This document shows positions 9,326 through 53,097 of a stretch of 64,000 bases of DNA, piece by piece. The stretch's first letter is position 1. Each line of letters opens with the position of its first letter. The notes under the pieces were generated by a model. The model was not told the origin of the DNA. It worked only from the letters and a program-made list of their open reading frames with translations, and searched no databases. The stretch lies in the NCBI GenBank assembly GCA_038496445.1, contig JALMLS010000303.1:40722-104721 (forward strand). Direction: 5' to 3'. Source of the stretch: Trichosphaerium sp. ATCC 40318 (taxonomy: Eukaryota; Protista; Tubulinea). The position numbers were made by a program, and so were the translations under genes.

Positions 9326-9841
9326 GGGTGCGCTCTGAGCAAAAAAACAAAAAATTTAAATTTGATCGTTTGCACCTCAGAGTGCCGGAATAATTTTTCT
9401 TATATTTTTGAAGCATACACATTGCACTTATTGGTTTACTTGCGGATGGGTGTTAGTTCAAATCCGCATGTAAACCAGAAAAGTGTTGCTGAAATTTTAA
9501 CAATTTTACTACGGCATCCTACGGTGCCCATACTTTTGTCACATGGCCGCCACATTATATAAATGCGTCAGCAGCAGTGATAAGGTGGAGAAAGATGGAG
9601 ATTCTGAGAAATCACCAAAAAACTGCCTTTTTTGCCAATTTTTATCATAAAATCACTTTTGTTTTTGCAACTATACAAACTCTACACCACTTGAATGTGG
9701 AGAATATATATACAATAAAACGTTTTCACTTCCAAAATGTTTTTTGGCAGGCTTAGCTGGCCACTAGAGCTAAATTACAAAAAAAAACCCAAAATTGTGG
9801 CGAATTTTAGTGAATTTTCTGATCGAGCACAGAGCGCACCC
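9326..9841. mobile_element. Non-autonomous DNA transposon (MITE) with 15-bp TIRs and TTAA flanks; Kolobok-like termini
   Basis: TTAA|GGGTGCGCTCTGAGC ... GCACAGAGCGCACCC|TTAA (1 mismatch); non-coding interior; partial second copy at 36849-36971. Confidence 0.8.
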
Positions 9842-11046: not shown

Positions 11047-11505
11047 TACCACTGCTAATATAGCCAAAAGACTTTAGCCATCCACTATAAGTAGAAACAC
11101 CGTTTCGTATTAGCCTTTTAATACCCGAATGATTCGGGTACCCATTTTTGGTTTTTGGGATATTTTCCCAGGCTGATATTGAATCACATTGATAAAACCC
11201 TGGAATGTTAGGTTGGTATTCTGCCTTTTCCTAATCCTCTCTGTATGGAAAATTATATAAAATACTCATATATTTGTGGGTAATTAGGAATAATAAAGCA
11301 AAAACGTGTCACGGAAAGGTATTTCGCCGATGAGGAATCATTCGGGGTTTCGGGCAAATAACTTTTGGATAGGCGAGGTATTGTTAAAAAAAGGCTGAGT
11401 GTTATTGTACAGTTAACCAAGTCAATTACCAAACTCGGGTATTCTTGTCTTAAAAATTTAGAGAAATGTTCTTTGAACTAAACATCAAAACTACAAAGAA
11501 TGACT
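11047..11505. repeat. Inverted repeat IR2, left arm (partner ~18885-19295): upstream region of the secreted-protein family
   Basis: Reverse complement of 18885-19295 up to and including the start codon; a further short match links 10668-10705 with 19425-19464. Confidence 0.9.
11122..11348. mobile_element. Putative ~230-bp MITE with ACCCGAATGATTC terminal inverted repeats (other copies 19038-19231 and partial 22568-22658)
   Basis: Starts tacccgaatgattc and ends gaatcattcggggt; a third partial copy lies outside the IR2 duplication. Confidence 0.55.
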
Positions 11506-14215: not shown

Positions 14216-14983
14216 TCAAGAAATAGTGCACCCTTGTTTTTCTTGTTCTATCCCTTTGATATAAGTGCTAAATTTAAGCAATTGACCTCGTGAATTCCAC
14301 TTCTTGTACTCTCCATCAATTATACCATTCACTACATTAAACTGTTGATTTAATTGGCCGTTTTCAAACCAGTGGTTGATCTGACCTTCTCCTTTACCCT
14401 TAATATATCTGCCTGCCTGAAATAGCTGACCATGTACATACCAAATCTTGTACTCTCCATCTCGTAAACCATTTACATAGTGATATTGCCTCCGCAATTG
14501 CCCATTTTCATACCAATGCATTTCCTCTTTGTCTAGCTTACCACGTGTATAATAACCTTTCTTACATAATTGTCCAGAGTAATACCAAACCTTAAACTCT
14601 CCCTCTCTTCTCCCGTTGATGTAATGCAACTGCTTGTTTAATTGAGCGTTGCTATACCAGTACTCACACTCACCTTCTCGTTCTCCATTTAGACAGCTAT
14701 ACTTTTCGCACATCTGTCCATTGTCATACCAACCCACGTGCTCGGATAGATAACCATTTTTCCAGTAATCTTGCACTGTAATTGCTGGTTTTGAGCGATT
14801 ACATTCTTGTTTAATCCATTTGCCATGTTTCCGTAACTTAGAGTCAAACCTCGTAGTTGTTGCCGCTTGTAGAGATAAAAGAGGGTATTTTAAGTAAACT
14901 TCAAAGTCCAGCTCTATCATAATATACTGCAGCTCTAATGGGAGCTGTAATATAAGACAACTACCAAATTTTGAAGTATTCAT
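14216..14983 (-). CDS. Intronless F-box-like + MORN-variant (MORN_2/YwqK-like) repeat protein with C-terminal CaaX (CTIS)
   Basis: LILQLPLELQYIMI N-terminus; about 7 repeats of GExxxWYxNGQLxxxxxYxNG; ends GCTIS*. First ATG at 14983. Confidence 0.85.
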   Translation of the reverse strand: MNTSKFGSCLILQLPLELQYIMIELDFEVYLKYPLLSLQAATTTRFDSKLRKHGKWIKQECNRSKPAITVQDYWKNGYLSEHVGWYDNGQMCEKYSCLNGEREGECEYWYSNAQLNKQLHYINGRREGEFKVWYYSGQLCKKGYYTRGKLDKEEMHWYENGQLRRQYHYVNGLRDGEYKIWYVHGQLFQAGRYIKGKGEGQINHWFENGQLNQQFNVVNGIIDGEYKKWNSRGQLLKFSTYIKGIEQEKQGCTIS

Positions 14984-15201
14984 CTTGTCTTGTGTAGTGA
15001 ACTGAACAGACGTTAAGGTTGTTAAGACAATGTCGCTGTAGAGGTTCGTTGGTTGTTGATATTTAGGTTTTACGGTGATCACGTGTTTCTCTAAAGTTTT
15101 AGAAAGAAAAAACCGAGTTTGACTCTTAGATTAAGTTGTAGCTATTTATTCTTCTCAAAGGTTACGCTTGAAAGAACACGCTGCGGCAACATCAGCAAAG
15201 C

Positions 15202-18887: not shown

Positions 18888-19295
18888 TCTTCGTAGTTTT
18901 GATGTTTAGGAGAACACGTGTTTCTCTAAATTTTCAGCCAAGAATGCCCGAATTTGGTGATTGACTTGGTTAACTGTACAACAACACTCAGCCTTTTATT
19001 AACAATACCTCGCTTATCCAAAAGTTATTTTCCCGAAACCCCGAATGATTCCTCATCGGCGAAATACCTTTCCGTGACACGTTTTTGCTTTATTATTCCT
19101 AATTACCCACATATATGAGTATTTTATATAATTTTCCATACAGAGAGGATTAGGAAAAGGCAGAATACCAAGCTAACATTCCACGGTTTTATCAATGTGA
19201 TCCAATATCAACCTGGAAAATAATTCGGGTATTAAATACGAAACGGTGTTTCTACATATATGGCTAAAGTCTTTTAACGATATTTGGTAGTGGTA
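18885..19295. repeat. Inverted repeat IR2, right arm
   Basis: Reverse complement of 11047-11505. Confidence 0.9.
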
Positions 19296-22216: not shown

Positions 22217-23039
22217 CTGATCTCTAGTGTAATTATGTAAATAATAAAGTTTGACTATCCTTGTTAAAGCGTGTTGCTTTAAATAACGTCCACGTGTTAT
22301 TTGATACAACGCAATAGAGTGTACATTATTCTCGCCAAAATGGAATGGTGTTAATGTTTCAGCCATAAGAGTAAGACTACAAAACCAGTAAACAATTTTT
22401 TCAACTTTGAAAAAATGGAATAAAAAGCTCAGTTATGAAAGTGTACACGAGTTTGGTGATTAAAAAGCGTTTTACCGTCCCCTTGTAATTTTGCTCAATT
22501 CCGAGTTTAATGAGCCGGCAGTGTCTGGGTATTGACAGCACGAATGATTTGAGTGATTTTGCTCATATAAAATACTCACATACGCGGTAATTACGAATAA
22601 TAAAGCAAAAACGTGTCACGGAAAGGTATTTCGCCGATGAGGAGTCATTTAGGGTTTAATAACTTTTTTTTTAGATTTGGGTTAACTTGATTGTAACGTG
22701 CAACAGCATACGTTACTATTCTCTGATTACATTTAATCATGAGACTAATGATATCTCGATAAAATGTATTCTCTGAATTATGTAATGACCTTTAATAAAT
22801 ACGCTATTATCCTACAACTAAGGCCACTTCTCTCTTACACGTATTCTCATCTTTCGTGTGCCCTTCAACGTTTCATTGATACCAAAGTGGAGGCGCAGAA
22901 AAGAAATAAGGAAACCTGGCAAAACAACTTTGTAAGGAATTAAGGCAGACTATTCATTAAGCCGTTTTTAGAAAATAAACTAACTTCTCGCAGTATACTT
23001 GTGCTCGCAACACTCGCACACTATTAGTACGATTATTTG

Positions 23040-24655
23040 ACAAAAACTAACGGTGATCATACAATGGAAAAGGAGAAACAACAAACACAGTTCAACCAAG
23101 TATTCGACCTTGTTGCGCTACCAATTGAGTTAATAGTCCATATTCTCAAACAAGGGACGTATACACTTCGTACAGCCCAAACGTGCCATCTTTTACGAGA
23201 TATTGTTCACAACCATGTTGGGTATGGCCGTATCCGTATTAAAAACACAAATGAAGTTCAGATGCTTTCTGGTAGTCCATTACTCCACAATACGAATTGA
23301 TTTTTTTCAATATACGCCAACAAACGACATTATTGCAGCATTGGCAGGTGTACACACAATCTCCTTGTATGATTGTGAGTCAATAACAGACAACGGCATT
23401 GCAGCATTGGCAGGTGTGCACACTATCAACTTGTTTGCGTGTAGATCAATAACAGACAATGGCATTGTGGCATTGGCAGGTGTACATGATATTAATTTAA
23501 CAGATACAAATGTAACAGATGAAGGTTTGAAGGCATTGGCAGGTGTACACACTATCAACTTATGTTATTGTAAATCAATAACAGACAGTGGCATTGTGGC
23601 ATTGGCAGGTGTACATGATATTAATTTATCAGATACAAATGTAACAGATGAAGGTTTGAAGGTATTGGCAGGTGTACACACAATCTCCTTGTATGGTTGT
23701 AAACCAATAACAGACAATGGCATTGTGGCATTGGCAGGTGTACACTCTATCAACTTGTATGGTTGTAAATCAATAACAGACAATGGCATTGCAGCATTGG
23801 CAGGTGTACATACGATTGATTTATCATTTACAAATGTAACAGATGAAGGTTTGAAGGTATTGGCAGGTGTACACACTATCGACTTGTATGCTTGTAAATC
23901 AATAACAGACAATGGCATTGCGGCATTGGCAGGTGTACACTCTATCAACTTAGACGCTTGCCGATCAATAACAGACAATGGCATTGTGGCATTGGCAGGT
24001 GTACATAGGATTAATTTATCACATACAAATGTAACAGATGAAGGTTTGACGGCATTGGCAGGTGTGCACTCTATCAGATTGTTTGGTTCTAAGTCAATAA
24101 CAGACAATGGCATTGCGGCATTGGCAGGTGTACATGATATTAATTTAACAGATACAAATGTAACAGATGAAGGTTTGAAGGCATTGGCAGGTGTGCACTC
24201 TATCAGATTGTTTGGTTCTAAGTCAATAACAGACAATGGCATTGCGGCATTGGCAGGTGCACACACTATCTCCGTGTATGGTTGTGAGTTAATAACAGAC
24301 AATAGCATTGCAATCACTGGTAGGCGCAAAATTAATTAGCTTGGAAATATTCAGCAAAATTATTTCATGTCATGTACAATATGTCTAATCTATGTAAGCA
24401 GTTGTTGCTCTAGTAAAGTTCTATTAATCAGTAAGAAAAATGTATTTGCACTCAAGTATATTCCGCTTAGACATCCTTAATGGGCATTTCCAGATCACTC
24501 TTTGAAAAAGTCTCTATTTTGTTAATCGACAGAAACTAACACACATACACATGACTTGTGTGCCAAGGTTGGAACAAAACGAAAAAAGGAAGTTAACATG
24601 ACCATTCACCAAAGGGTTAAATAAAGCATGTTACAACTTTATTTGAAGCACCTTG
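23040..24655. repeat. Inverted repeat IR4, left arm (partner 35387-36780)
   Basis: The LRR gene, ~105 bp of identical 3' flank (24335-24440 vs 35576-35681) and a further block 24535-24655 vs 35387-35504 match in reverse complement. Confidence 0.9.
23064..24339 (+). pseudogene. F-box/LRR protein gene (14 LRR modules + cap) with a frameshift between the F-box and the LRRs
   Basis: F-box-like LVALPIELIVHIL..AQTCHLLRDIV; relative to the 36756 paralog 2 nt are missing near 23294, giving TGA at 23298. The LRR frame 23203-24339 is fully open. Confidence 0.8.
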
Positions 24656-25269
24656 TACTTTTGTAGTGAAACCACCTGCATAGAAAAGGTTCGTCCAATG
24701 ATATTACAGTAGGTCATGCTAGTGTGATATACACCAAAGGCAAGTATTGTGAACTTTCAAGTGTTGCCAGCCATTCAGCTGTTTGGGTAGTGCCTGAATA
24801 TTGTCCAAGTTACTTTGAAAAAAAGTTGTAGGTTTCGGCAAGCTTAGTGATGGTTTGTTCTATATTGCAAAGATGTTATCTACTGCTTATTTGCTGTATT
24901 TGAAGTGCTTTGTGACTACTTACAACTGAATGAAACCCTACATATCAACAACTTCGTGTCAGCTGCTACAGAAAAAAAACCAAGAGGTTTTTTGACATGT
25001 GGTTTTGCTTTTTGACAAAAGGCACGTAGCCTTTTTGTGAATATTTTACTATGGCATCAATTGTACACTATTCTTGATCGAGGTAGGGAGATTTAAAAAT
25101 AGTTATCTTGGTTGCTCCGGAGTCTATAAATAATCATATTTACACAACTTTTTGTTCACATTTTTTTCTGTTACTGCTACATTGATTAAAACAACGAATC
25201 AATCAATGTAGTGAGCAAAAAAAAATATTGTTAGCATCATGAAATGGGAGAGAAGAGTACATTTTGCTG

Positions 25270-27897
25270 TCATCATGTATGTTGACAGTTAAGCAAGTGG
25301 GTGAACTTGAGGTTGTCGAGAAAACTCGTGTACGTTACTAAATTCAGTCAAATTCAATGGCAAGTACTTTACTCAATCAATTCTGAATTGACCCTTTAGA
25401 TCAATCCTTCAATCCAATAAAGGCAGCGCAAGGTGATCTGGGAGGAAAAATAACACACAGTTCCTGACCGATAGCTCTGGTGCAGAGCGAGCGTGTGGTT
25501 TATTTTCCCTCATCAGGTTCACCTTCTGCTTGGAGGCTATGTCAGGTTCCTTTTGGGTTAGTGTGGAATAACATACAGACAAGTAAAATCAAACTCGCTT
25601 ATTTTTATTACAATTTGTTTTTGAGAAAGAAAAAAAGGATTATAAGCGACGTAAGTGGCTCTCATTTGATAAGAGGTATGTTTTAAATTCTTCAAGTGCA
25701 TCAGATACTGCTTTTTTAGCGAAATCTTTTAAAGCTTGTTGATCAATATCATTAAGGAACCATTCTGTGTATTCGAAAAGAGGTACATGTCCATCACCAT
25801 CAGTGTCAGCCATTTTCTAGAAAAAAAGTTAGTAAATGAAGTTTTCCTTGTTCTAGAAAAAGTCACGTGGTTTTTGTTTTGATTATTGGATTTATGAATA
25901 TTTTAGTGGTTTAACGTACATATCCGAATTGGTATATAGCATGATACATCTTTTGTAGAGGGTAATGTTTAAAGTATTTTTCCATTTTTACTTTGTTTCT
26001 CATTTCAATTTGCTTGTCATCAGGAACATTCTTTTCAGTCAAAATCTCATCCAGTACAGTCCTTTAAAAACCATAATTAGAATACATAAGCAAGCAAATA
26101 CAAAACGATGACAAGATCACTAGAGTTGGTTTTTTTATCAAAAAAATTGCAACGTACGGTAAAAGGCTTTTCATAAACATTTGATGTAAGATTGAACACT
26201 GCTTATTCATATGTTTGAATTCGCTTTGAGATACTCTATCAGAGTGATTTGTATCCAGTAACATAAAACTCACTAGTGTATAATGTTAGTAAGGTCTCAC
26301 ACAAGGAGATAAAGACGGTTTGAACAATCCAAAAAAAGAAAAGACGTACACTCGCATATCTCGTGACGACCAGTAGCAAGCTTAATACGATCTAGAAAAG
26401 TCACAAAGGCCTTTAATGGCACTACAGACTTTTTATGGAGTGACTTATAATAGCCATGAATCAAACTAGCAGTAGTAGAAGCATAGATTTGTTGACAAGT
26501 TTGTTGTTCTTTTATAGGCAGATCATTCATTGTCTTTAGGTAAACACTGCAGTCAGGATTAGACACTAAAGTGTCTAAAATATTTCCATTAAAATAAAGA
26601 CTGTGGTTCATGAATTTATGCTTAAATAAAGATGTAAGTAACAGAAATTACATCGAAAAAAAAACGTGAAATAAAACAAATTATCAAAAAATCAGGAACT
26701 TCTTCACTGCTGTTGACTTACCAATATTGGAAATACTTTTGCTGTATTGAGGTAATTAAATACTTGTGCTGCGTCTTTAAGATTAATAGTTTGAGAAGGA
26801 GCGGAGTAATATAACTGCTTGGTAGGAGCATCAGTCACTAAAGAAAAAGGAGTAAGCATTTCGAAAAAGCCCTCTTCGAAAATGTCTCAGTAATCAATTT
26901 CTTCTGCCGTACAGCAATCAAAAATCCCTTCTCCAATGAGCTTTGCCCTTATATGTAATTTCCCCTTAATTTTTCTTTTAATCTTATCGCCTGACTGGAG
27001 GTCAAGAATGAAATCACAAAGTGAATCCTTATTTTGAGGTGTAAGCATCTTCATAGAATTACGAATTTGCCACAAGTTTAAACGAGCAACAGCCACTACA
27101 AAACATGTAAATACAACACCAGCAACAACCTTGTAAAGTATCAAGGATTATAAAAGGCTGTGAATCCCGAAAAAGAAAAAACAAAAAAAACGAAAACGTA
27201 CATCCTTTGTGATCGTCCTTGGTTTGAATACAAAGGTCAATATCGAAGCTTGTACCCGCTACCTTTGCTAGTACGCCGTCTTCTTCCCATGTGCATTGCT
27301 TAAAGTACTGTTAGAGCGGAATAAAGTGAAAACCTTTAGGAAATAATTTCAGAATTTTTGCGCTGTATGTTCGTACCATTGGTGCGTTTTCAGCTGCTTT
27401 TACTGCTGAAGCTTCTGTTTCAAAATATTCTGGGTTTGGTGAATTATCTCCACGCCAGTGCGTATGTACGCATAGTTTTGGCGTAACTAGGTGCGTTAGA
27501 CAGTATCCTGTACATTCTTCCAGAAAATATACGCCTAGAGAACTACATTTTGCTCAAACTGGCCGTGGTTTTAGCCAATGTAGCAGGGGCATCTACGAAG
27601 TGGCTTAGAATTAAATTCGTTTTATGTACCAGGTAATTGTCCATCGATGTCTACGAGCTTGTGGATGTGTAATTGAACGTCCAGTTGACCATTAACACCG
27701 ATTGGTGCCGCATTTAATTGCGAATCGGAGTCTGACTCAGAATCGTTATCTTGCGGAGCAGGTGGTGCCGTAGGAGGTGTTGGCGCGGTCACAGTAGATT
27801 TACTACCAGACAAAGAAGCTCCAGTGGAGACAGTGCTAGAGTTCAAAGGTTGACTAGAAGCAGTTGTAGAAACTGCGTCGTTGCTTTGTTGGCTCAT
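25270..27897 (-). CDS. Multi-exon protein with Ser/Pro-rich N-terminus, probable C2 domain and EF-hands
   Basis: LDVQLHIHKLVDI..VAVARLNL..KGKLHIRAKL (C2-like); DTNHSDRVSQSEF and DTDGDGHVPLFEY (EF loops). 3' end approximate. Confidence 0.6.
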
Positions 27898-28078
27898 TTT
27901 GGAATGTACTTTACTAAAGTACAGCCTTATTTAGTCAGTTTTCCATACTTAACAGTCATCGCTTTTTGGTACCCCTACAACCATTAATCTAACATAGTAG
28001 GAGTACAAGAGCTATATTTAGGCTTAATTGGGAAACCGTTGACGGTCGAAAACTCAATTCGTAATCAGACATGTTGTT

Positions 28079-29743
28079 TTATTTTGAAAGGAATCCAAAG
28101 TGGATAGCATGAGTATTAACTCTCTTTACAGGTAGATCCTTCTTCCAAGCGTTATACTGTAATTTGGTATCAACAATTCCAAGGTTCTGTTGGAAATCGC
28201 CCAACCAAGCGCTATCATTAGCATCCTTCTCAGCGAAAGCAAGAGGCCTAAAGTATTAAATTAAATTGTTAAAACCAAACAGCTTGAAGCATGTATCGGC
28301 GCGAGTTCGGAAAAGGAGAAAAGTAATCAAACTGAAAGAAAAATAAATACCTTGTAGCTTCAACATTGATTAAACTTAAGCCTTTGCAAAGATCAAATGA
28401 TGGCTCCTCACTAGCTTCGAAAAGACCAGAAAACTTTCTAGCACCTATAATAAATCGTGTAAGAAAATATAACTAAACATCAGTTGGATAGCATCCAAAC
28501 AAACGCTGTTGAATATAAAAACCAGAAACTATCAAAAAAAAAAAGAAACTTACCAATTATAGCATCCGTGTCTGTTGCTGCCTCTTGTGTGTTATTTATG
28601 GCATCTAACAAACTCATAGCTTCTCCATCAGGACCAACAGCACAGTGTACATTATCCTCCATCAAGTAGAAGTATTCATAATCGAAAAGCGAACAAAACG
28701 CTTTTGCAGCTTCTTTGAGTATTGTCTTTGATGCTCCAGACTTTACAGGTACACAAACAAATGGCTGTGTTGGGAATTCTTCTTTATAAGCTTTTAAATC
28801 CTCTTGCGGAATAAATACTAACTGTCTGTAGTCTTTAGACTCAACAAGGGATTCTGATGTTTTAGAGTCCTTTAATGCATTTGACAGGTCCAATTTGGCT
28901 GTTGTGGGACGTCCAGTTGATGTAATACAGATAGGATGACGGATTTTAAAAGAAGAAGGTGGAGACTTTATGCTTGGTAGCATATCGCGAGTTTTAGATA
29001 GAGGGATGCAGAGCTACGAACAAAAATTAGAAAAAAAAAATTGAATGGGAAATTTAAACAAAATAACTAAAGATCTACGTCATGACGCTAGCGACGCGTG
29101 TATAAACCACGATAACGTATTAGCACAATATTTAAGAGTCACTTTGTAAGGGAGTGGGGTTTTTTTCTCGGATTCGGTAGTTACCTTGAATACAAACTTT
29201 CCAAAGCGATCTAGTGACTTTGGTAGCAATACATCATCTGGTATCAGGAATTGAAGGTGAGGAGAGCCAACAAGGATTGTCGTGTCAGTACCTAGAGCGG
29301 TTTAGCTATTGTCAGTATGACAAACGTGCGAAACGATTGCTGTAAGCATTAATTTCACTACGCTGAGTGTAACAGCGGTTTTTTAGCGTGATAAAATACA
29401 ATTACACTCGACAGTACCTTGCCATGCCAATGCCTTGCCTAGAGGATCTCTTCGAGAGCGTTTTACTGCATACTTTTCTTTGTTTTTTATATCGCTGCTT
29501 TTTCCGTGTGTAGAAGCGCCATAAGTGCGCTTGAGTACTTCTGTAAAGTCTTCTGGCCGTGTTGGTGTTTTGTTTGAATTACTAGTCGCCAAATATCTCA
29601 CGCGCATTGGTAGAGTCTAAGTAGAAGTACAGTGAGAATGTGGCGATCAATTGGAAAGCAGGAAGCAAATAGTAGATTAACTACGCTATACGCCACACCG
29701 CTTTATCAGCAAGTGTAAATATGCGTACCCGTGCTCTTTGCAT
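28079..29743 (-). CDS. GREB1-C/TAGT-like GT-A glycosyltransferase-fold protein with a mitochondrial-presequence-like N-terminus
   Basis: PICITSTGRPTTAKLDLSNAL..RQLVFIPQEDLKAYKEEFP..PFVCVP..G..ILKEAAK..YEYFYLMEDN parallels, motif for motif, the GREB1 C-terminal glycosyltransferase pattern as I recall it. N-terminus MQRARTLPMRVRYLATS. Confidence 0.55.
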
Positions 29744-30309
29744 TGAACGTCCTGAAAAACTCGTAACACGCAACATTGTGGTCACCAACGCTTATAGTAT
29801 ACTTACAAAGTGTTACCTGTCAACATAAGAGTAAAAATCAATGTATAAAGGTAGCGACAGGTTTATAGATATCCTGTATTACGCGTTACAACGTACAATG
29901 CGTTTTCTTGCCTAAAACACAAACAAACTGACGTTGAAGGACTTTGTAGAAAAAATTTCTTCTGTTGTTTTTTGGCTTCAAAAAAATGTCTTCTACAAAA
30001 ATTGATTAGTGCTCTAAAACACGTCTCTGGAGCGTGTTTATTATTGAGTTCAGTAGATTGCATATTCAGTGACACCTAAGATGTTTGATTTTGATAAATG
30101 TGCTCATCAGTCTGCTAGATGGCATCTATGCGATTGCGTTCTTAAAGGGTTAAAAGAGGTAATTGCAGCACGTGGAATGCAGAGCTCTGACTTCAGCGTG
30201 TAAACTCAGGGGTGCACCGATGAAAAACTTCACAAAATGATAAAAGTCAATGACAGGCAAAAGCGACAGTTCAATTTAAACTCAGAATAAATTGTTGGTA
30301 GCTGACAAG

Positions 30310-33300
30310 ATGTATGCGAGGTTACCTCGTTATGGACTAGCTGCCGCGCAGCTCAACGCGCATCGAACTATTCAACGTATGCTTTAACATTACTTTCAGT
30401 AAGCGTCGCTGACATTAGCAAGGTCGAAGAATAACCAGAACGAAACATATCAGCGCGAAAGCAAATTACACGCGAGTGAGGAAAGAAACAATACCACGTC
30501 TAAACCTACGCGATGGGATAAACGGAACACTATTCAGTAGTCGTTTTAATGCGCGACCGAACAACTTCGTCTCAACAAAATTATTTACTGTACCACCATC
30601 TGTTGCACGTTACTACCACCTTGGAGCCTTTCAACACGCCGGGGCTGCGCCTCAGCAGCAACCAAAGCCAGTATCTACAAAGGCTTCTGAGAGTAAAGAA
30701 ACAGCTCAAACCAGTAAAGAAGAGAACCAAGAGGAGTTAATACCGATAAGCTTACCTAAATCGTACGTTTTACGTAAAATGATTCTATATCGCTTTGCTA
30801 TGCTACAAATAGATCACAACGGTTAAAAGTTTGCATTCATATCTCCTAACACCCTCAAATTGCCGTTTTACGAACAAATCGCGTCATTCAAACAATTTTT
30901 TTTTTGCTTTCAAGTCTCCTGTTCCTTCTCGTTCTCTTTTTGATAAAAAGCTCACCTAACGCTTATACCATTATTTATATAACGTTATATACCTAACTTA
31001 TTGTCTTTTTAGACAAACTCCTGCTCCTGAGAAGTCATTTATGGCTGCTGTCACTTCTACGCTTCAAAACGCATTTGATATGATTGTTGGAATGTTTAAA
31101 GTAGTCTGCGACCCTAAGACGTATGTGTGGCTGTACCAAAAAATGGTAGAAGTTAAAAAACTTCTTTTGGCCGCTTATCGTGATCCTGTTGGAACACGTG
31201 AATGGTTGTGGAAGTTTTTGAAGGATGGCGCACATCACACTTGGGTTGGTCTTAAATTATTTGGTAAAAATGTAGCAACATCTACTGGTATTGTGTTCAG
31301 GCATTTAAGCGGTACGTAGTGCGGTAGGTTGCGTTATTGTCGCAGCAACAAAAAATTTAGTTTTTGGAAAAATTAATGAAAAAAAAAATAGTCCAAAGTG
31401 AAGACAATACTTGGATGGAGTGTTGTTAAAATATTTTAATTTTTGACTTGTTTTATAGGTAAACCTATGACGTATCGTGAATATCGTTTATTGATCAGAA
31501 CAAGTGCTGACATTTTCAGAATGGTTCCATTTTCTTTTTTTATATTGGTACCAGCGATGGAAATTTTTTTGCCTATTTATCTATATCTATTCCCTGGTAT
31601 GCTTCCGTCTTCATTCAGAAGCGATCTACAAAAAGTACGTATATATTAATAGCATATTGAGCGATTATTATCTAAGTTTGATTGTGCTGTGTAAAGCTAT
31701 TAATTTTTTTTCTTTTTTTTATTATTTTCCTTGTGAACAATATCTTTTAATGTTAGCATGATAGGACGATTACTTGCGTAAACGATTGCGTATTAAAATT
31801 GATATGGCAAGATTCTTGCGTGAGGCATTGAAAAAAATGAAGAAAAAGGGAGATGATCCACAAGGTTACGAAAACTTTATCAGAAAGGCACGTGTGTATA
31901 CTAATTTTTTTTTGATTCGAGTTTTTGAGCTCAGAAAAATAATAACCTTTTCGCGTGCTTGTATATTTGGCCGCTACGTTGTCTTGATTTCAATTGTACT
32001 TATATTTTTTTTTGCAGGTTAAAAGTGGCGAGCCTGTGGAAAAACCAATTCTAATGAAATATGTCAAATACTTCAAGGATGAATTTACAACTGATAATCT
32101 TACACGTGGTCAGCTTGCTCAAATGTGTCAAGTCATGGGATTACCTATGTTTGGCACTACAGAATTTCTACGTAATATTCTTAGAGTAAGGCTTGGTATG
32201 CTCCGTAAAGCTGATAGCGTACGTTGTACTTTTTTAATCGGGTTTCTATTTTTTGTTGAAACACCTCTTTGGTCGTTCATTTATGATTTATAGCTCTTGA
32301 CACCGGAAGTAATTGATAGTTTTTCTACAATGGAATTACGTGAAGCAGCTTCATTGCGTGGTATGGATGGCAAAGACTTGCGTACACGTATGAAGAATTG
32401 GATAGATCTGGCAAATAAAAAGAGTGTACGTTTTCTACGCATTAGTTTACAGGTTGTTGCTGTTGTTCTGACGTATTCCTTTAGGTCCCTTATACTATCC
32501 TTTTTTTGTCTCGTGTATTTACAGATCCACAAGACTCAACTGTAGAGCAGCAAGATCAACGTATCAAGGTATGTCAATTAAACGAAAAGAGCACTTTTTT
32601 GCTTCATCAGAACTTGGGATATTTAGATTGAATTCTAACATGACCTTTAGGAAGTTATCTCTAAGATGCCTGCCGCTGCTATTGATGAAGCTGAAGTAGA
32701 TGAAGAAGATGTCGTACCAGAGTTGAAACTTGAAATGATTAAGGAGCAACAAGACTTAAACGCAAAAGAAAAAGATGAAGAGGATAAAAAGAAAAAAGCA
32801 GAAGAAGAAGCCAAAAAGGCGGAAGATGAAGCTAAAAAGGCTGTGGAAGAAGCAGAAGCAGCAAAGAAAGAAGAAGAACTTGCCAAGCAACTGCAAGAAG
32901 AAGCTGCAGCCAAAGAAGCCGCAAAACCAGCTTCTGAGCCTGAACCAGAGGCCCAGCCTATTAAAAAAGATACTAAGGCACCAGTTGAAGAAATTAAAAA
33001 GCCTGCGGAAGCAAAACAAGCAAGCAAAACAGCCGAGGCTAAAAAACCATCAGAACCATCAAAACCAGCTTCAAAAGATGCTTCTGTACCAGAAGCAGCT
33101 ACAACTACTGAAGTTGAACCAGCTGCTGAAACAGCTGCTCCAGTTTCTAAAGAAGAGACCGCTGAAGCCGCTGCTAAAGATAAAAAAGATGAGGAAGCTT
33201 TACTTGATGAACAGAAAGTTCGTGATGTTGCCGACTGTTTGGCTACATTAGCAAAGCCTCTTGATGAAGAAAAAGAAGCTATCCAAAGCCTTAAAGATAA

Positions 33301-34616
33301 GTTCTTTGCTGATAAGCGTGATGCTGTAGCAGAAGAATTAATGGAGGAAGCTATTGAAGAAGCTCAGGTAAGGCTCTTTGCAAACATTTTTCAAAAAAAC
33401 TTTTTTCTGGCATGCCCTGCTCATCCCTACTGTACAATTCACTTACCTTATATCAGGAATACCGTAAGAGAAAAGAAAAAGAAGCTAAACAAGCTGAAGA
33501 AGCAGCTAAAGAGGCTGCAGCACCTGCAGCTGAAGGTGATAAGCCAGCACCAACTGATTCCGCCAAGCCTGCTGAAAAAACACAAAAAGCAAAAGCAGAG
33601 CCTAAAGCTGAACCTAAAAAAGCAGCTAAGGTCGCTAAACCTACAGAGGCTAAACCTGAAGCTGTTAAACCTGCTACAAAGTCCACTGAGGCTCCTGCAA
33701 CTAAAGCAACAGAGAAAGCCGCTGAGGAGAAAAAGGATCTGTCCTTTGCTGAGAAAGCAGAAGTTCCTGCTGCTGAGACCCAAGAAACACCTGCAGCTCC
33801 TGTAGAAGATGCTGCAGAAGCTGAAAAGGCAGAAGAAGAAGGTATGACAGAAGAAGAAAAAGAGGAAGAAGCTAAAAAAGTCGCAAAGGCCAAGAAAGAA
33901 AAGGTAGGGTTTGAGTCAAATAGTTTTTCTTCTTTTCTGACATTCTTGTGCTTTTAGGAAAAGAAATTACAGAACCGTTTGGATGCTACATTGTCCTCAT
34001 GGGTAGATCAACTTGAAAAAGAAGTTGATGCTCTTGGTACTGAGGTTGTTCGGTTACAAATTATCGATCAAAATCAAGATGGTGTCATTTCAACACAGGA
34101 ACTCATTGACGTAAGTTTTATTCTTTTTTCTTTCTTCTGAAATCATTACTTAATGAGATTTAAGTCAATTTGTTTTATCTTTTATTGGCCCTTTGTGGTT
34201 GCTTGTTTTTTTCCTTCTTTCCTTTTGTTGTCAGACTAGGAACTTATGTGCGTTTGTCTAGGCTATTGATACACAATTTAATCAAAAATATAAACATGAA
34301 GATATTCGTTCTCTCATTGCACGTTTTGATACAAATGAAGATGGAAACATTGATGTAGCATATTTGAAACAATTTTCAGGTGGAGACCTTGATATTCAGG
34401 CCGAACTACGAGGAGAAGAGCGAAAACGATTAGAAAGGTATGTAACACAAAGATGATCTTCTTTTTTGTTTTTTTCTTTCTTTCGTCGAAAATTGCTTCC
34501 ACTTTTCGAGAGTTCCATTCACTTGTTTTTTCATAAGTTAATCTGTTTTCTTTAGAGAACAACAAGAAAATGAAGCCAACAAAGTTGAACAACAGGCTAA
34601 AGACTCTAAGGAATAA
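30310..34616 (+). CDS. LETM1: LETM1/Mdm38-like mitochondrial inner-membrane protein with EF-hands and a long charged low-complexity insert
   Basis: Presequence MYARLPRYGL; HHTWVGLKLF; REYRLLIRTSADIFRMVPFSFFILVPAMEIFLPIYLYLFPGMLPSSF; DNLTRGQL; ELREAASLRGM; EF loops DQNQDGVIS and DTNEDGNID. Confidence 0.93.
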
Positions 34617-35386
34617 ATAAAACAAACCCAAACCAAACAAACCCCCTAAAAAAAAAAAGTGTCCATATAGTATCTTGGTGGTGAGCCAAAAAAAAAATTA
34701 ACTCTAACCCCCACTCTATTCCTTTGCTCTCTCACCTTTAAAAGTGTCGTGAAAAAGAATTATATTTATTTACAAAAAAGCCCACACAGCACCACAGCAC
34801 ATTCATGTAATGAAAAGAAAAAAAAAAAATGAAAAAAGAATAAATCAACCTCCGAATTAATTAAGAAGGAATACTTGACAGCCTAAACAGCGCTGTTAAT
34901 TTATTAATGTTTGACGAGAAGCAGATGAATATTTGGTTGGTGTAACTGTTCTATGAAATGAGTGGACAGTTTGAGTCTTTTTTTTGTTGGAAGTAGGCTG
35001 TGCGTGTAAAAAAAAGTAGTGTTGTTAAATAGTCGACTTTGGACCTACTTGAACAGCAAGGGTACCTACTCCCTTTGAGGTCTCTAAAAATGAGTTTTAT
35101 ACCCTTAGTTAGTTGGTAGCGAGAACACGCTACAAGCACCACAGCACCAAGATAGAGTGTAATACACCAATGTGATGCTGTTAAATGCTCCAGGGATATT
35201 TTCCTACTTTTTTCTGCTATTGAGGCCATTTCCAGTCGCTCAGAACTGAAAACCTGCTTTTGATTTTAATCAAATGAAGGCAGCTGAAAAGAAGAAGAGC
35301 ACTGGCAAAGAGGAGATGGTAAAATGAGTGAAAATGAGCATGTGCTGAGAATTCACATACTTAGCTTTTGTGTATATCGCACTAAG

Positions 35387-36780
35387 AGGTGCTTCAAATA
35401 AACTTGTCACATGCTTTATTTAACCCTTTGGTGAATAGTCATGTTAACTTCCTTTTTTTGTTTTGTTCTGACCTTGGCACGCAAGTCATGTATATGTGTT
35501 AGTTAAAAAGTCATGTTTTCAGCTTTGAAAATTAGTCCTTAAGCACCAAATGTGTTTAATGGAGATAATAGTAAGTTTTTCTTACTGATTAATAGAACTT
35601 TACTAGAGCAACAACTGCTTACATAGATTAGACATATTGTACATGACATGAAATAATTTTGCTGAATATTTCCAAGCTAATTAATTTTGCGCCTATCAGT
35701 GATTGCAATGCTATTGTCTGTTATTAACTCACAACCATACGCGGAGATAGTGTGTGCACCTGCCAATGCCGCAATGCCATTGTCTGTTATTAATTTACAA
35801 GCATACAAGTTGATAGTGTGTACACCTGCCAATACCTTCAAACCTTCATCTGTTACATTTGTATGTGATAAATCAATCGTGTGTACACCTGCCAATGCCG
35901 CAATGCCATTGTCTGTTATTGACTCACAAGCATACAAGTTGATAGTGTGTACACCTGCCAATACCTTCAAACCTTCATCTGTTACATTTGTAAATGATAA
36001 ATTAATCGTATGTACACCTGCCAATGCTGCAATGCCATTGTCTGTTATTGATTTAGAACCATACAAGATGATAGTGTGTACACCTGCCAATGCCTTCAAA
36101 CCTTCATCTGTTACATTTGTACATGATAAATCAATATCATGTACACCTGTCAATGCCGCAATGCCATTGTCTGTCATTGATTCAGAACCATACAAGTTGA
36201 TAGTGTGTACACCTGCCAATGCATTCAAACCTTCATCTGTTACATTTGTATCTGATAAATTAATCTTATGTACACCTGCCAATGCTGCAATGCCATTGTC
36301 TGTTATTGATTTACAAGCATACAAGTTGATAGTGTGTACACTTGCCAATGCCTTCAAACCTTCATCTGTTACATTTGTTAATGATAAATCAATCGTATGT
36401 ACACCTGCCAATGACTTCAAGCCTTCATCTGTTACATTTGTATCTGATAAATTAATCTTATGTACACCTGCCAATGCCACAATAATGTTGTTTGTTAGCT
36501 TTTTCTGGCTGAGATCAATAGTTGTATTGTGGAGTAATGGACTACCAGATAGCATTTGAACTTCATTTGTGTTTTTAATAGCAATACAACCATACCCAAC
36601 GTGGTTGTGAACAATATCTTGTAAAAGATGGCATGTTTGGGCTGCACAAAGTGTATAGGTCCCTTGTTTGAGAATATGGACTATTAACTCAATTGGTAGC
36701 GTGACAAGGTTGAATACTTGGTTAAACTGTGTTTGTTGTTGTTTTTTCTTTTCCATTGTATGGTCACTAGTTTTCGTTAA
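35387..36780. repeat. Inverted repeat IR4, right arm
   Basis: Reverse complement of 23040-24655 with a different LRR module number and order. Confidence 0.9.
35677..36756 (-). CDS. Intronless F-box/LRR protein (11 LRR modules + cap), 359 aa
   Basis: LVTLPIELIVHIL..AQTCHLLQDIV F-box-like; 21-aa and 22-aa LAGVHxIxL modules. Confidence 0.92.
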   Translation of the reverse strand: MEKKKQQQTQFNQVFNLVTLPIELIVHILKQGTYTLCAAQTCHLLQDIVHNHVGYGCIAIKNTNEVQMLSGSPLLHNTTIDLSQKKLTNNIIVALAGVHKINLSDTNVTDEGLKSLAGVHTIDLSLTNVTDEGLKALASVHTINLYACKSITDNGIAALAGVHKINLSDTNVTDEGLNALAGVHTINLYGSESMTDNGIAALTGVHDIDLSCTNVTDEGLKALAGVHTIILYGSKSITDNGIAALAGVHTINLSFTNVTDEGLKVLAGVHTINLYACESITDNGIAALAGVHTIDLSHTNVTDEGLKVLAGVHTINLYACKLITDNGIAALAGAHTISAYGCELITDNSIAITDRRKIN

Positions 36781-36848: not shown

Positions 36849-36971
36849 TAAGGCGTCACGATCAGAAAATTCACTGAAATTTGCTGCAATTTTCTTTTTT
36901 TTTGTAATGTAGCTCTAGCGGCCAGCAACGCCTGCCAAAAAACATTTTGGAAGTGAAAACGTTTTATCGTA
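36849..36971. mobile_element. Truncated copy of the 9326-9841 MITE end, ~95 bp upstream of the F-box-LRR start
   Basis: Reverse complement of ~9711-9825 (gcctgccaaaaaacattttggaagtgaaaacgttttat). Confidence 0.8.
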
Positions 36972-37149
36972 GAAATTAATTCTCCCTTTGTCGTTTGACT
37001 GTTGTTTTGATAATAATTAGCGTATTGAACGCGTAAGAAGGGCGTTTAAGACATTTAAGTGTATTTTAAGTTAAAAAAACTTGTTAGAACAACGTACGGC
37101 TTGGTTTCCATGTTATAGTGTTTATTTGCTTATATAGTGGTATTAGCCT

Positions 37150-40716: not shown

Positions 40717-40974
40717 ATGTTCTTAGATTGTCTCACATTAAGTGCCAGCTTGAGAATAAACTTCTTTCATGAGCACCATATTATTGATTTATCTAGTACA
40801 GAAGTAACTGATGATGGTTTGAACGCGTTGGCAGGTGTACACACTATCACCTTGAACTTTTGTACAATGATAACAGATTCAGGTATCAACGCGTTGGCTG
40901 GTGTTCATGAGATTAGTTTGCTATCTCTGACAATAACAAAAGAACTATTAAACGCAATTTCAGGCATACTATGA
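40717..40974 (+). pseudogene. Orphan LRR modules (B-type then A-type) of the F-box-LRR family, no F-box
   Basis: IDLSSTEVTDDGLNALAGVHTITLNFCTMITDSGINALAGVHEISL; keeps the ttggcaggtgtacac junction. Confidence 0.7.
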
Positions 40975-41689
40975 ATTTGCACTGCTGGGAATTGGCAGAT
41001 GACGAAACTGTCAAGGCATTGACTAATGCTATTACGATAAATAGATACTAGCTCACAGCTTTGTTGTGGGATGAAGACCGTCAAACCCATAAATACAACG
41101 CTAGTAAACGGAAGATCTCCCATAGTTCAGATTCTAAGTTTCTTCCTTTTAAAAGTTCTCATCTGTGTGGTGTAAAGGCTAGCATATCATCATTCGTACT
41201 TTGAAGATTCCAGTTCGCTGGATAGATGACACTCATGCTTATGGTGTAGTGGTAGCACTCAAACAGACGATGCTATGAAGCTAGAGCTTGATCTCATAAT
41301 TCTACAGTTAACCCTGAGATTCAATTTGTAGGCTATGACTCAATCACCTTCTTTTGTAAGAAAAAATTGAGAAAGCCATGCAATCCCATCTGATCTTGCC
41401 GTCTATAGCCTGTCAAACGCCCACCCTCTATGTGACTGCTGAAAACATTGAAAAAGTGCGGCTCTACCTTCAACTGCAGTGCCAAAACCTTTAAAGCACA
41501 CTATTGTACTGAAGTGTTGCACATGTGGCTTATTTTGCTCAAACGTTTTCAAAATACGGTTGTTTTTATTTTGTTTTTGACCATACAGCACATTGATGCT
41601 CCAGCTCTGACACATCAAACTTTAGGTTACACAAACATCATCAAAATTAATAGGTAGCTTCAAAAAATCAATATACCTTTTGCGTCATG

Positions 41690-41898
41690 TCCTTTATGTA
41701 CCTTCCAATCTACCATTAGCATAGTAGCAAAGGTGTTGTAATTTGTCCATTGTTAAACCTTTGCCTGCACTCTCCATTATCCTTACCATCCAGATAATTT
41801 GTATGTAAAACCAATTGCCATGCTTTATTCCACTGTTTAAACTCTCCTTCTATGTCACCATTGACGTAATAACACTGTTTAATCAATTGACTTTCCAT
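41690..41898 (-). pseudogene. MORN-variant repeat gene fragment
   Basis: QLIKQCYYVNGDIEGEFKQWNKAWQL..YLDGKDNGEC..FNNGQ; frameshifted, no N-terminus. Confidence 0.7.
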
Positions 41899-41899
41899 A

Positions 41900-42230
41900 G
41901 TGATAGATGATCAATTAGTTACAGATAAAGTACTAGTAAATATACTGACGTGTCAGAAGGCATTAGCGCTCGCTGTAGTTTATAAAATAAACCTCTCTGA
42001 AACAGATGAGACCAGCGAAGGTCTTAAACCGCTTGCTGTCGTTCGTACCATTGACTTCGGTTTGACTAGTTTAACAAACTAAGGGTTGAAAGCACATGCT
42101 GGAGTTCATACCATTTGCCAAAGTCAGTGCTACAATGTGACAATGAAGGCTTGAAAGCGTTCACGCAATTGATTTTGAATCATGTTGAAAAAGATACACC
42201 CTATCTCTTACCTATGCAAGCATTGAAACA
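41900..42230 (+). pseudogene. Degenerate LRR modules
   Basis: LAVVYKINLSETDETSEGLKPLAVVRTIDFGLTSLTN*GLKAHAGVHTI with stops and frameshifts. Confidence 0.65.
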
Positions 42231-51454: not shown

Positions 51455-53097
51455 TTATATCATGTATATTTTATGAGCACCCAACTTTTTAACAGCTTCT
51501 TCTGTAACACCATCACAGCCACTGACATCAATAGCATAAACTCCCGACAGCGCTTTGATACCTTCGTTTGTAATACCTTTACAGTGCCTAAGAGATATGA
51601 TATGGACACTTGAAAGTGCTTTTATGCCTTCATCTGTAATATTGTCACAACTTCGAAGCTTTATAGTGTGAACACTAGAAAGTGCCTTGATTCCTTCATC
51701 TGTAACATTTTCACAGAGTACGATAGTAATTTCATGAACATGTGAAAGAGCTTTGATTCCTTCATCTGTAATATTTTCATTACAACAAAGAGTGATTGTG
51801 TGAACTCCTGAAAGCGCTTTGATACCCTTGTCTGTAATTTTATGACAATAATCAAGATTAATTGTATGAACTCCAGAAAGCGCTTTGATTCCTTTATCTG
51901 TAATGTGACCACTTCCAGTAATGTTAATAGTGTGAACACCTTCTAGTACTTTGATACAGTCGTCAGTTACATAGTCACAGCAGTGGAGGTTAATTGTATG
52001 AACACCAGCAAATTCTTTGACAATATCAGAGGAGTAACTAACAATATTGATCTTTGTTTGCTTAAGAGTGCTGGCATGTTTTAAAAGTGATTTTGCTTCA
52101 ACCATGGTTGAAATAGTAACGCTTTCGTATCCAATAATGTCATGAATGATTGACGCAAAACGATGGCACGTTTGACAAGCCGCAAATCGTGCTTTTGTTG
52201 TTTGTTTTAAAATTAGAGCTAAAATCTCTGTTGGGAGTTCCAGGACGTGTTGCTCAGCACTTTTCGATATTAGAGAGGCCGGCTTAACTGCCCGGTGAAT
52301 GCAGCTTCTCTTCAGTATCTTTTATTTTACACCTTTAGGTTATCTCTACACTCTCCAGAGCCCTTTACGCCCATGACGGGCCCAAAGCACTCCTGCGCAC
52401 ACAGTTTAATGCTATAGCTCTGTTTGACATGCTAAAGTACTTTTAGTCACACCGCTGGCCTTTCTTTTGTATTTCGTTGGTAATCCGATTTAATTCTCTA
52501 TTCTGCTTTTACACACTAAAATCAACTACACTAACTCGATTTTACTTTCTCACCACTTTTTAGCAACAAACTAACTTCCTAAAGGAACACCTCACTATTT
52601 CTACGTCTACGGCCATTGAACATGCTTGTAACTCAAACATTATTAGCAGGTAATGAAACTAGATCAATGAAGATAGCTGGACCATTTCTATATGCACTTG
52701 AGCAATACAGTAATTAAACGGATAGCAACAAATTGTCATAATCAAATTGCTGACCATTAATAGAACATACGCATATGCTGGACGACAAGGTTGGTTAAAA
52801 AAAAAATGGGCAAAAGAAAAGAAATTGGTATGTAAACTTTTGGAGATTTATTTTTACTCTAGTTTTATTTTCATCTGTACGATTGGTTCTGTTCCATGAC
52901 ATGATATCCTCCTGTAACTTTCTGTACACGCATGTCAATCTGTAAGTCGTCTTCCATGTAAACCCCCCTATATGTAATAAAGTAGGCGCTAGCGCGCTGC
53001 CTCTTGTTCTAAAAAAAAAAAAACACTTTTCGATATTAGAACAGTGATTAGAAATTTAGTAAATGTACCTTTGATTTACGAGGCGTTCTTTTGACAT
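51455..53097 (-). CDS. F-box/LRR protein (about 8 x 22-aa LRR), 2 exons; intron lengthened by a retroposon
   Basis: Exon 1 53097-53069 (MSKERLVNQ) splices in frame to 52259 (S-AEQHVLELPTEILALILKQ..CQTCHRF) and continues into ORF 51455-52105. Confidence 0.85.
52275..53023 (+). mobile_element. Non-autonomous non-LTR retroposon (~750 bp) with poly(A) tail and 17-bp target-site duplication
   Basis: CACTTTTCGATATTAGA at 52258-52274 and 53024-53040; A13 at 53011-53023; AATAAA at 52976. Confidence 0.9.

Follow-up and report, generated by a model that had tools for sequence, protein, structure and literature searches.

Young F-box–LRR genes with homogenised repeat scaffolds and diversified faces in the amoeba Trichosphaerium: candidate HNWD-like genes of giant-virus type

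We analysed a stretch of 64,000 nucleotides from the genome of the free-living marine amoeba Trichosphaerium sp. ATCC 40318 (contig JALMLS010000303.1, positions 40,722 to 104,721; hereafter the window), which carries two paralogous genes, g1 (ATG at 23064, + strand) and g2 (ATG at 36756, - strand). They face each other across 11 kb, and both join an F-box-like N-terminal region to an array of short leucine-rich repeats (LRRs). The reading that we prefer, with a probability only slightly better than even (about 0.55), is that g1 and g2 are young, concertedly evolving, face-diversified F-box–LRR genes of giant-virus type, similar in their mode of evolution to the fungal HNWD genes, and that their products are probable adaptors of SCF (Skp1–cullin–F-box) ubiquitin ligases. 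For comparison we used a transcript protein of the same strain (P0131; MMETSP0405 transcriptome, taxon 498012) and three small sequencing runs of the same organism (X1, X2 and X3), represented by short assembled contigs, none of which spans an array.

Both genes were parsed into two types of module, A (22 aa, 66 bp) and B (21 aa, 63 bp), and each array ends in a capping module after 14 (g1) or 11 (g2) of them. The first-pass annotation of this DNA had read the same strings of modules (Table 1), and the sequence recurs in tandem every 129 and 195 bp, the lengths of an AB and an AAB unit. Its description of a nearly invariant scaffold was borne out by the synonymous divergence between modules, which is 0.016 for B and 0.108 for A, versus 0.20 in the N-terminal coding region. 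The variation that it had placed at the non-consensus positions of the repeat is indeed concentrated there: codons 6-13 of module A hold 23 of 32 allele events (p 6e-5), and codons 6-11 of module B hold 11 of 18 (p 0.006). The further statement that such changes are often multi-base codon swaps had to be abandoned, as two changes from the nearest other allele are needed in only 4 of 36 face codon alleles. In the AlphaFold model of g2 the repeats form an LRR solenoid (pLDDT 77-90 across the repeats), with module positions 6-10 as a beta-strand in which I7 and L9 are buried and separate the variable positions 6, 8 and 10 from one another. In the established structure of LRR proteins, positions 6, 8 and 10 belong to the ligand-binding concave face. 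The codon of isoleucine 7, although it lies among the variable positions, has the same DNA sequence in all 25 modules, as has that of leucine 9 in all 11 B modules.

The strength of selection on this face was estimated from minimal event counts, with the face positions set beforehand from the LRR consensus. The face holds 27 amino-acid-changing events over 26.3 sites and six synonymous events over 6.7 sites; the corresponding figures for the scaffold are 12 over 71.4 and six over 24.6. Amino-acid change on the face is 4.2 times the synonymous change of the scaffold. A fixed-sites codon model with a shared synonymous rate gave an omega (dN/dS) of 3.1 for the face and 0.46 for the scaffold (p 1e-4). 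In the dN/dS comparison that had been proposed at the outset, made here on the 25 modules of the window, omega of the face exceeded 1 in both rate settings, significantly only with the shared rate. Because recombination biases codon tests, we also ran toy simulations of module pools under conversion. Eleven settings with a neutral face or with import (whole-module or short-tract conversion, homology-dependent conversion, import from diverged donors) yielded a ratio of face amino-acid change to scaffold synonymous change of about 0.8, and the observed 4.2 was reached in at most 3% of runs; in these models, a relaxation of constraint was by itself insufficient to generate the excess on the concave face. 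Simulated selection against the overwriting of face residues came closest to the data (median 2.9, P 0.26), and such a model fits an arms race and a position-specific protection of contacts alike. Selection on the face is supported by the sequences, but not proven.

Further evidence comes from the degenerate first repeat, the face residues of which read IDFFQYT in g1, IDFFREK in P0131 and IDLSQKK in g2. With a further X1 contig, four different faces are found at this one repeat, which favours diversification between genes. P0131 is identical to g1 over its first 77 residues (77/77) and is in frame throughout the junction with the repeats; the in-frame g1-like copy is therefore expressed. Since five residues of the first two repeats differ between P0131 and g1 (four of them on the face), the transcript is not simply a corrected g1 and is, judging from these differences, an allele or a sister copy of it. 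An X1 contig is identical to g2 at 157 of 158 nt (36461-36618), and g2 itself is likely expressed, with the types of the runs being coded or guessed. In a gene neighbouring the family members of the window, zero differences to X2 and X3 contigs were found.

The first-pass annotation had also proposed repeat shuffling, and the modules of g1 and g2 do form one mixed pool. The distance between modules is no greater between the genes than within them (A, 7.3 vs 8.2 nt, p 0.92; B, 5.5 vs 5.5 nt, p 0.43), and the nearest neighbour of a module often resides in the other gene: g1-8 and g2-8 are 1 nt apart, g1-9 and g2-11 are 2 nt apart. In g1 itself, module 12 has the same sequence as module 14, and module 3 the same as the non-adjacent module 13. 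Incompatible pairs of informative sites are frequent in A (46 of 105, approximately 44%; PHI-like p 0.04), with a p of 0.17 for B. The 3' ends of the two genes (24250-24440 vs 35576-35766) are identical at 189 of 191 nt, including an exact match of 120 nt, and these two mismatches in 191 nt stand against 18 in 216 (about 8%) in the N-terminal region (p 0.0008). Taken together, the sequence comparisons show that ectopic conversion moves both modules and 3' ends between g1 and g2. A and B have a 17-nt block in common, and because both module lengths are multiples of three, a crossover in this block would alter the order or number of modules without breaking the frame. From the 129- and 195-bp periods we infer that such crossovers caused the changes in order and number.

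The window also documents the death of copies. An older paralog, g3, is approximately 42-45% identical to g2, and its short 5' intron has received an insertion of about 770 bp (52258-53040, - strand) with a poly-T start and a flanking duplication of 17 bp. The 3' splice site is thereby present twice, and use of its downstream copy in splicing from 53068 would yield an intact frame of 277 aa. Two LRR relics lie between g2 and g3, the second of which is accompanied by a MORN relic (41740-41892, - strand) placed head to head with it (41945-42142, + strand), some 50 bp apart. The sequences of the relics and of the interrupted g3 show a birth-and-death turnover.

The identification of the N-terminal region as an F-box holds at the level of the family, as predicted from sequence and models, because relatives pass the Pfam thresholds (g3, with 24.4 bits, P0009 and P0151), because the family profile matches FBXL2 (E 3e-22) and FBXL17 as well as the F-box-only stretches of FBXO31 and FBXW7, and because three helices (aa 22-53) are present in the alignment-based model of g2. 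In the full-length single-sequence model the F-box region is unfolded (pLDDT <50). When the alignment-based model was used for a structure search, the LRR part determined the matches (best Z 8.0, to COI1). The F-box–LRR architecture announced for both genes consequently stands for the family, and for g2 with its solenoid in frame; in g1 the solenoid is out of frame with the F-box.

Absence of a wider family had been named as a refuting observation, and such a family is present: dozens of paralogous contigs with 80-99% identity were found, 97 in X1 and 68 in X3, and across the three runs these relatives keep the same scaffold while displaying new face patches. More distant A/B-dimorphic members occur in one JGI transcript set (P0001, P0009, P0010), in Clydonella (P0041) and on AT-rich metagenome contigs, beside ankyrin genes (L009). 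At 1380-2756, the 22%-GC metagenome contig L009, which probably derives from a giant virus, encodes a protein that combines an F-box with some 16 homogenised repeats of 22 aa and a variable face; beside this gene lie an ankyrin gene and a second, truncated copy of the gene's F-box. The top structural matches were LRR/F-box proteins of Hyperionvirus, Pithovirus, Tupanvirus and Mimivirus (up to 46% identity), and the proteins of Hyperionvirus (A0A3G5A7S5), Tupanvirus (A0A6N1NWW2) and Pithovirus LCPAC102 share the same short repeat of the xxGVHTIxL type together with an F-box. Scans of IMG/VR viral contigs with g2 and with the repeat alignment gave no confirmed relatives, the query patterns being narrow, and the exact 27-mer of the B scaffold, likewise a narrow pattern, was absent from the metagenome contigs searched. 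These blanks reflect the narrowness of the patterns, because the structure search found many giant-virus relatives.

Among described systems, the closest parallel is offered by the HNWD genes of Podospora anserina, whose repeats are exchanged within and between loci, whose pseudogenes keep intact repeats and in which four surface codons per repeat are under positive selection (PMC1805685). The likeness to HNWD drawn by the first-pass annotation fits well as regards module exchange and concerted evolution; the two systems also have in common near-identical repeats within and between loci, a variable number of repeats and only a few variable binding-surface residues in each (PMC1805685). The HNWD proteins differ in that their repeats are WD40 repeats on NACHT cell-death receptors, their recognition function is genetically proven and selection is significant on 69 repeats (PMC1805685). 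In the Trichosphaerium genes, by contrast, the repeats are LRRs behind an F-box, there are two module types and the evidence for selection is borderline. Pfam gives only F-box-like and LRR domains for g1 and g2, and no HET, NACHT or WD40 domain was found in them. By analogy, the family appears to work like HNWD without being a member of it.

Repeat shuffling in LRR families for which a role in immunity has been proposed is also known from the ROCO/NB-ARC-TPR genes of Ectocarpus (PMC3341825) and the LRR genes of Tetrahymena with 90-bp exons (PMC6564038). Birth and death and repeat shuffling are common to all of these, and diversifying selection has been reported in Ectocarpus (PMC3341825). In both, however, one repeat equals one exon, whereas the Trichosphaerium arrays are intronless and accompanied by an F-box effector domain. 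FBXL2 and FBXL17 resemble our genes in joining an F-box to an LRR solenoid, and differ from them as conserved genes with longer, divergent repeats. The fast-evolving F-box families of nematodes carry other substrate-binding domains. A lineage-specific expansion of F-box genes is likewise described in nematodes (PMC8665587). In the literature covered, which was partial, we found no published account of this module-exchange mode in amoeba F-box–LRR genes.

According to the reading that we prefer, g1 and g2 would have arisen in a large birth-and-death family of intron-poor F-box–LRR genes in Trichosphaerium. The number and order of modules would change, with the frame kept, by slippage or unequal crossing-over within the 17 nt common to A and B; ectopic gene conversion passes modules and 3' ends between loci, and selection would keep the face residues apart as the scaffold is homogenised. 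The process is envisaged as running over generations by ordinary recombination, not as a programmed assembly. By analogy with the known architecture, the protein is most likely an SCF substrate adaptor, in which the F-box would bind Skp1 and the concave LRR face the target of ubiquitination. Selection is probably exerted by a biotic antagonist, such as a giant virus, an intracellular bacterium or another cell line; family members might conceivably tag viral or endosymbiont proteins.

Several observations weigh against this reading. The Pfam F-box-like scores of g1 (18.5 bits) and g2 (13.8 bits) are below the cut-off of 24.3. When the face is given a free rate (about 2.8-fold, p 0.05), its omega drops to 1.5 (p 0.34), because synonymous change is also raised there. 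The analysis covers 25 modules from two genes only, recombination inflates the false positives of codon models, and the simulations are crude. Differences from repeat to repeat within one protein are, moreover, expected for any LRR protein with a fixed ligand. Finally, g1 is frameshifted in the assembly. Of the two F-box–LRR receptors originally announced, only g2 is an intact open reading frame (ORF); in g1 a 2-bp frameshift splits the F-box from the repeats, which continue in a different frame, open for 378 codons. With its broken frame, g1 may be a recent pseudogene or a defective allele, or the break may stem from misassembly or be bypassed by a cryptic intron. A homopolymer sequencing slip is unlikely from the sequence context, and an assembly error may be involved; GT-AG cryptic introns of 64-118 nt with weak donors would restore the frame on paper.

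Some of these points would be expected of a nearly neutral, self-expanding, virus-related family, in which the face is unconstrained, the scaffold is homogenised, patches arrive from older paralogs and many copies are dead on arrival. Omega is about 1.1 when counted within face codons, or a non-significant 1.5 with the free rate, synonymous sites of the face are raised (p 0.03-0.05), and in modules 4, 10 and 12 of g1 synonymous and amino-acid changes occur together in linked clusters that resemble imported patches. The scaffold omega of 0.46-0.6 amounts to weak constraint, g1 is frameshifted, g3 has received an insertion, and the two relics are close by. We nevertheless regard this explanation as rather unlikely, given the small share of neutral and import simulations that attained the observed ratio; long imported patches should, in addition, have disturbed the invariant I7 (25 modules) and L9 (11 B modules). 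The genes might instead encode ordinary SCF adaptors for the amoeba's own proteins, in which the contact residues of each repeat are kept for a fixed substrate and paralogs subfunctionalise with no arms race. The best-fitting simulation, that of protection of the face against overwriting, needs no arms race, the combination of fixed scaffold and variable face extends to distant relatives (e.g. L009), and the closest solved relatives are the housekeeping proteins FBXL2 and FBXL17. It is difficult to reconcile with fixed substrates, however, that module order and number differ between genes only 8% apart in the F-box region, that relatives with 77 identical N-terminal residues differ at four face positions in the next two repeats, and that copies die quickly; we consider this possibility improbable.

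The label "VLR-like" in the first-pass annotation implied a third mechanism, in which arrays are assembled or re-diversified from donor modules within the lifetime of the cell, for example among the nuclei of this multinucleate amoeba, by a dedicated conversion machinery. Lamprey variable lymphocyte receptors (VLRs) are built by deaminase-mediated somatic assembly from an incomplete germline gene and flanking donor cassettes (PMC12264053). The use of LRR modules, the variable concave residues and the conversion-like exchange through short homologies are similar (PMC12264053), and invariant ends around a variable string of modules with short homology blocks, the orphan LRR fragments in the window and an in-frame transcript with the N-terminus of g1 and different first repeats would all agree with such a system. 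VLRs are, on the other hand, distinguished by hundreds of donor cassettes, CDA-driven assembly, LRRNT and LRRCT caps, a signal peptide and a stalk (PMC12264053). Both Trichosphaerium loci contain complete germline arrays, with neither an incomplete germline gene nor a non-coding intervening segment at g1 or g2, and no donor cassette cluster flanks them: all that the 64-kb window has to offer are two decayed fragments with a likeness of 70-80%, interspersed with ordinary genes. By Pfam, no signal peptide, LRRNT, LRRCT or stalk was found, and the N-terminus is a charged stretch followed by the F-box. The mutation spectrum of the face has no excess of C>T or G>A, on which ground deamination of the AID type was rejected. 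Adenine mutagenesis by a diversity-generating retroelement was rejected too, with 12 of 14 third-position adenines of the scaffold invariant and face changes arising from all four bases; no template repeat was found outside the genes in the window. There is no C/G- or adenine-specific bias sparing function-neutral sites, and ordinary recombination accounts for all the features. We therefore consider a programmed system very improbable and the comparison with VLRs not sustained.

A more far-reaching proposal, which we advance tentatively and with considerable doubt, is that a genome-wide pool of interchangeable LRR modules, in which the homogenised scaffold maintains the capacity to recombine and selection diversifies the binding face, provides Trichosphaerium with fast-changing intracellular SCF receptors. 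Their targets would be giant viruses or endosymbionts, and the receptors may themselves descend from genes acquired from such viruses. If this were true, the repertoire would be a ubiquitin-based amoeba counterpart of the fungal HNWD receptors. Recognition of intracellular invaders by free-living amoebae is still poorly understood, and a family joining concerted evolution of repeats in the manner of HNWD to an F-box output is a testable candidate. The kinship with giant-virus F-box–LRR genes points to a host-virus conflict over the ubiquitin system. Should the face not be under selection genome-wide, the family would represent ordinary repeat-gene turnover.

Table 1. Features of the F-box–LRR family in the 64,000-nucleotide window
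Feature	Position	Strand	Remarks
g1 N-terminal region	23064..23294	+	77 codons with F-box-like motif (aa 18-54) and linker; sub-threshold match to Pfam F-box-like (E 0.0018)
g1 frameshift	23295..23300	+	2 bp fewer than g2 and P0131; outside a homopolymer; stop of F-box frame TGA 23298-23300
g1 degenerate first LRR (N-cap)	23296..23340	+	14 mismatches in 47 nt vs g2
g1 LRR array	23341..24249	+	14 modules, AABABAABAABABA; frame open
g1 C-cap module, stop (24337-24339) and 3' flank	24250..24440	+	recent conversion tract shared with g2
g2 whole gene	35677..36756	-	intact, intronless, 359 aa, F-box-like and LRR; stop at 35677
g2 LRR array	36474-35767	-	11 modules, BBABABABABA; Pfam LRR_6 E 3e-26
g2 C-cap module, stop and 3' flank	35576..35766	-	partner of g1 conversion tract
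LRR relic	40777..41030	+	lacks an F-box; frame broken by a stop and a frameshift after about 3 repeats; tblastn E 3e-17
Second LRR relic	41945..42142	+	more decayed, internal stop; tblastn E 3e-13
g3, older paralog	51455..53097	-	F-box and 7 A-type repeats; 277 aa if spliced

As regards the setting of these genes, the window has a GC content of 37% and contains spliced eukaryotic genes. In the published Trichosphaerium genome, which has a GC content of 37.69%, F-box and MORN are the domains met most often in 1581 giant-virus-like gene models; the text of that paper does not mention LRRs, module exchange or selection (PMC10521059). An intronless gene of the giant-virus-like type described there, which begins with an F-box-like region and carries MORN_2 repeats (E 2e-10), is located at 14216-15082 (- strand).

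The upstream region of g1 shows no relation to that of g2. A mobile-element unit around either gene was considered and rejected, as the homology between them sets in about 27 bp before the ATG and no duplication of at least 9 nt was found to flank them. Dispersed short repeats are present upstream of both: 36859-36985, upstream of g2, matches 9699-9825 (88%), and 22565-22667, upstream of g1, matches 11255-11366 and 19020-19129. Between the two genes, an ORF at 28480-28983 (- strand) gave a weak match to TAGT (TET-associated glycosyltransferase; E 2e-5, below cut-off). The first part of the window contains several duplications, three of them inverted (7648-8125/10158-10631, 90%; 11843-12853/21211-22218, 89%; 13190-13858/20122-20807, 72%) and one direct (8481-9319/18139-18959, 78%), the last comprising a spliced gene with a signal-peptide-like start.

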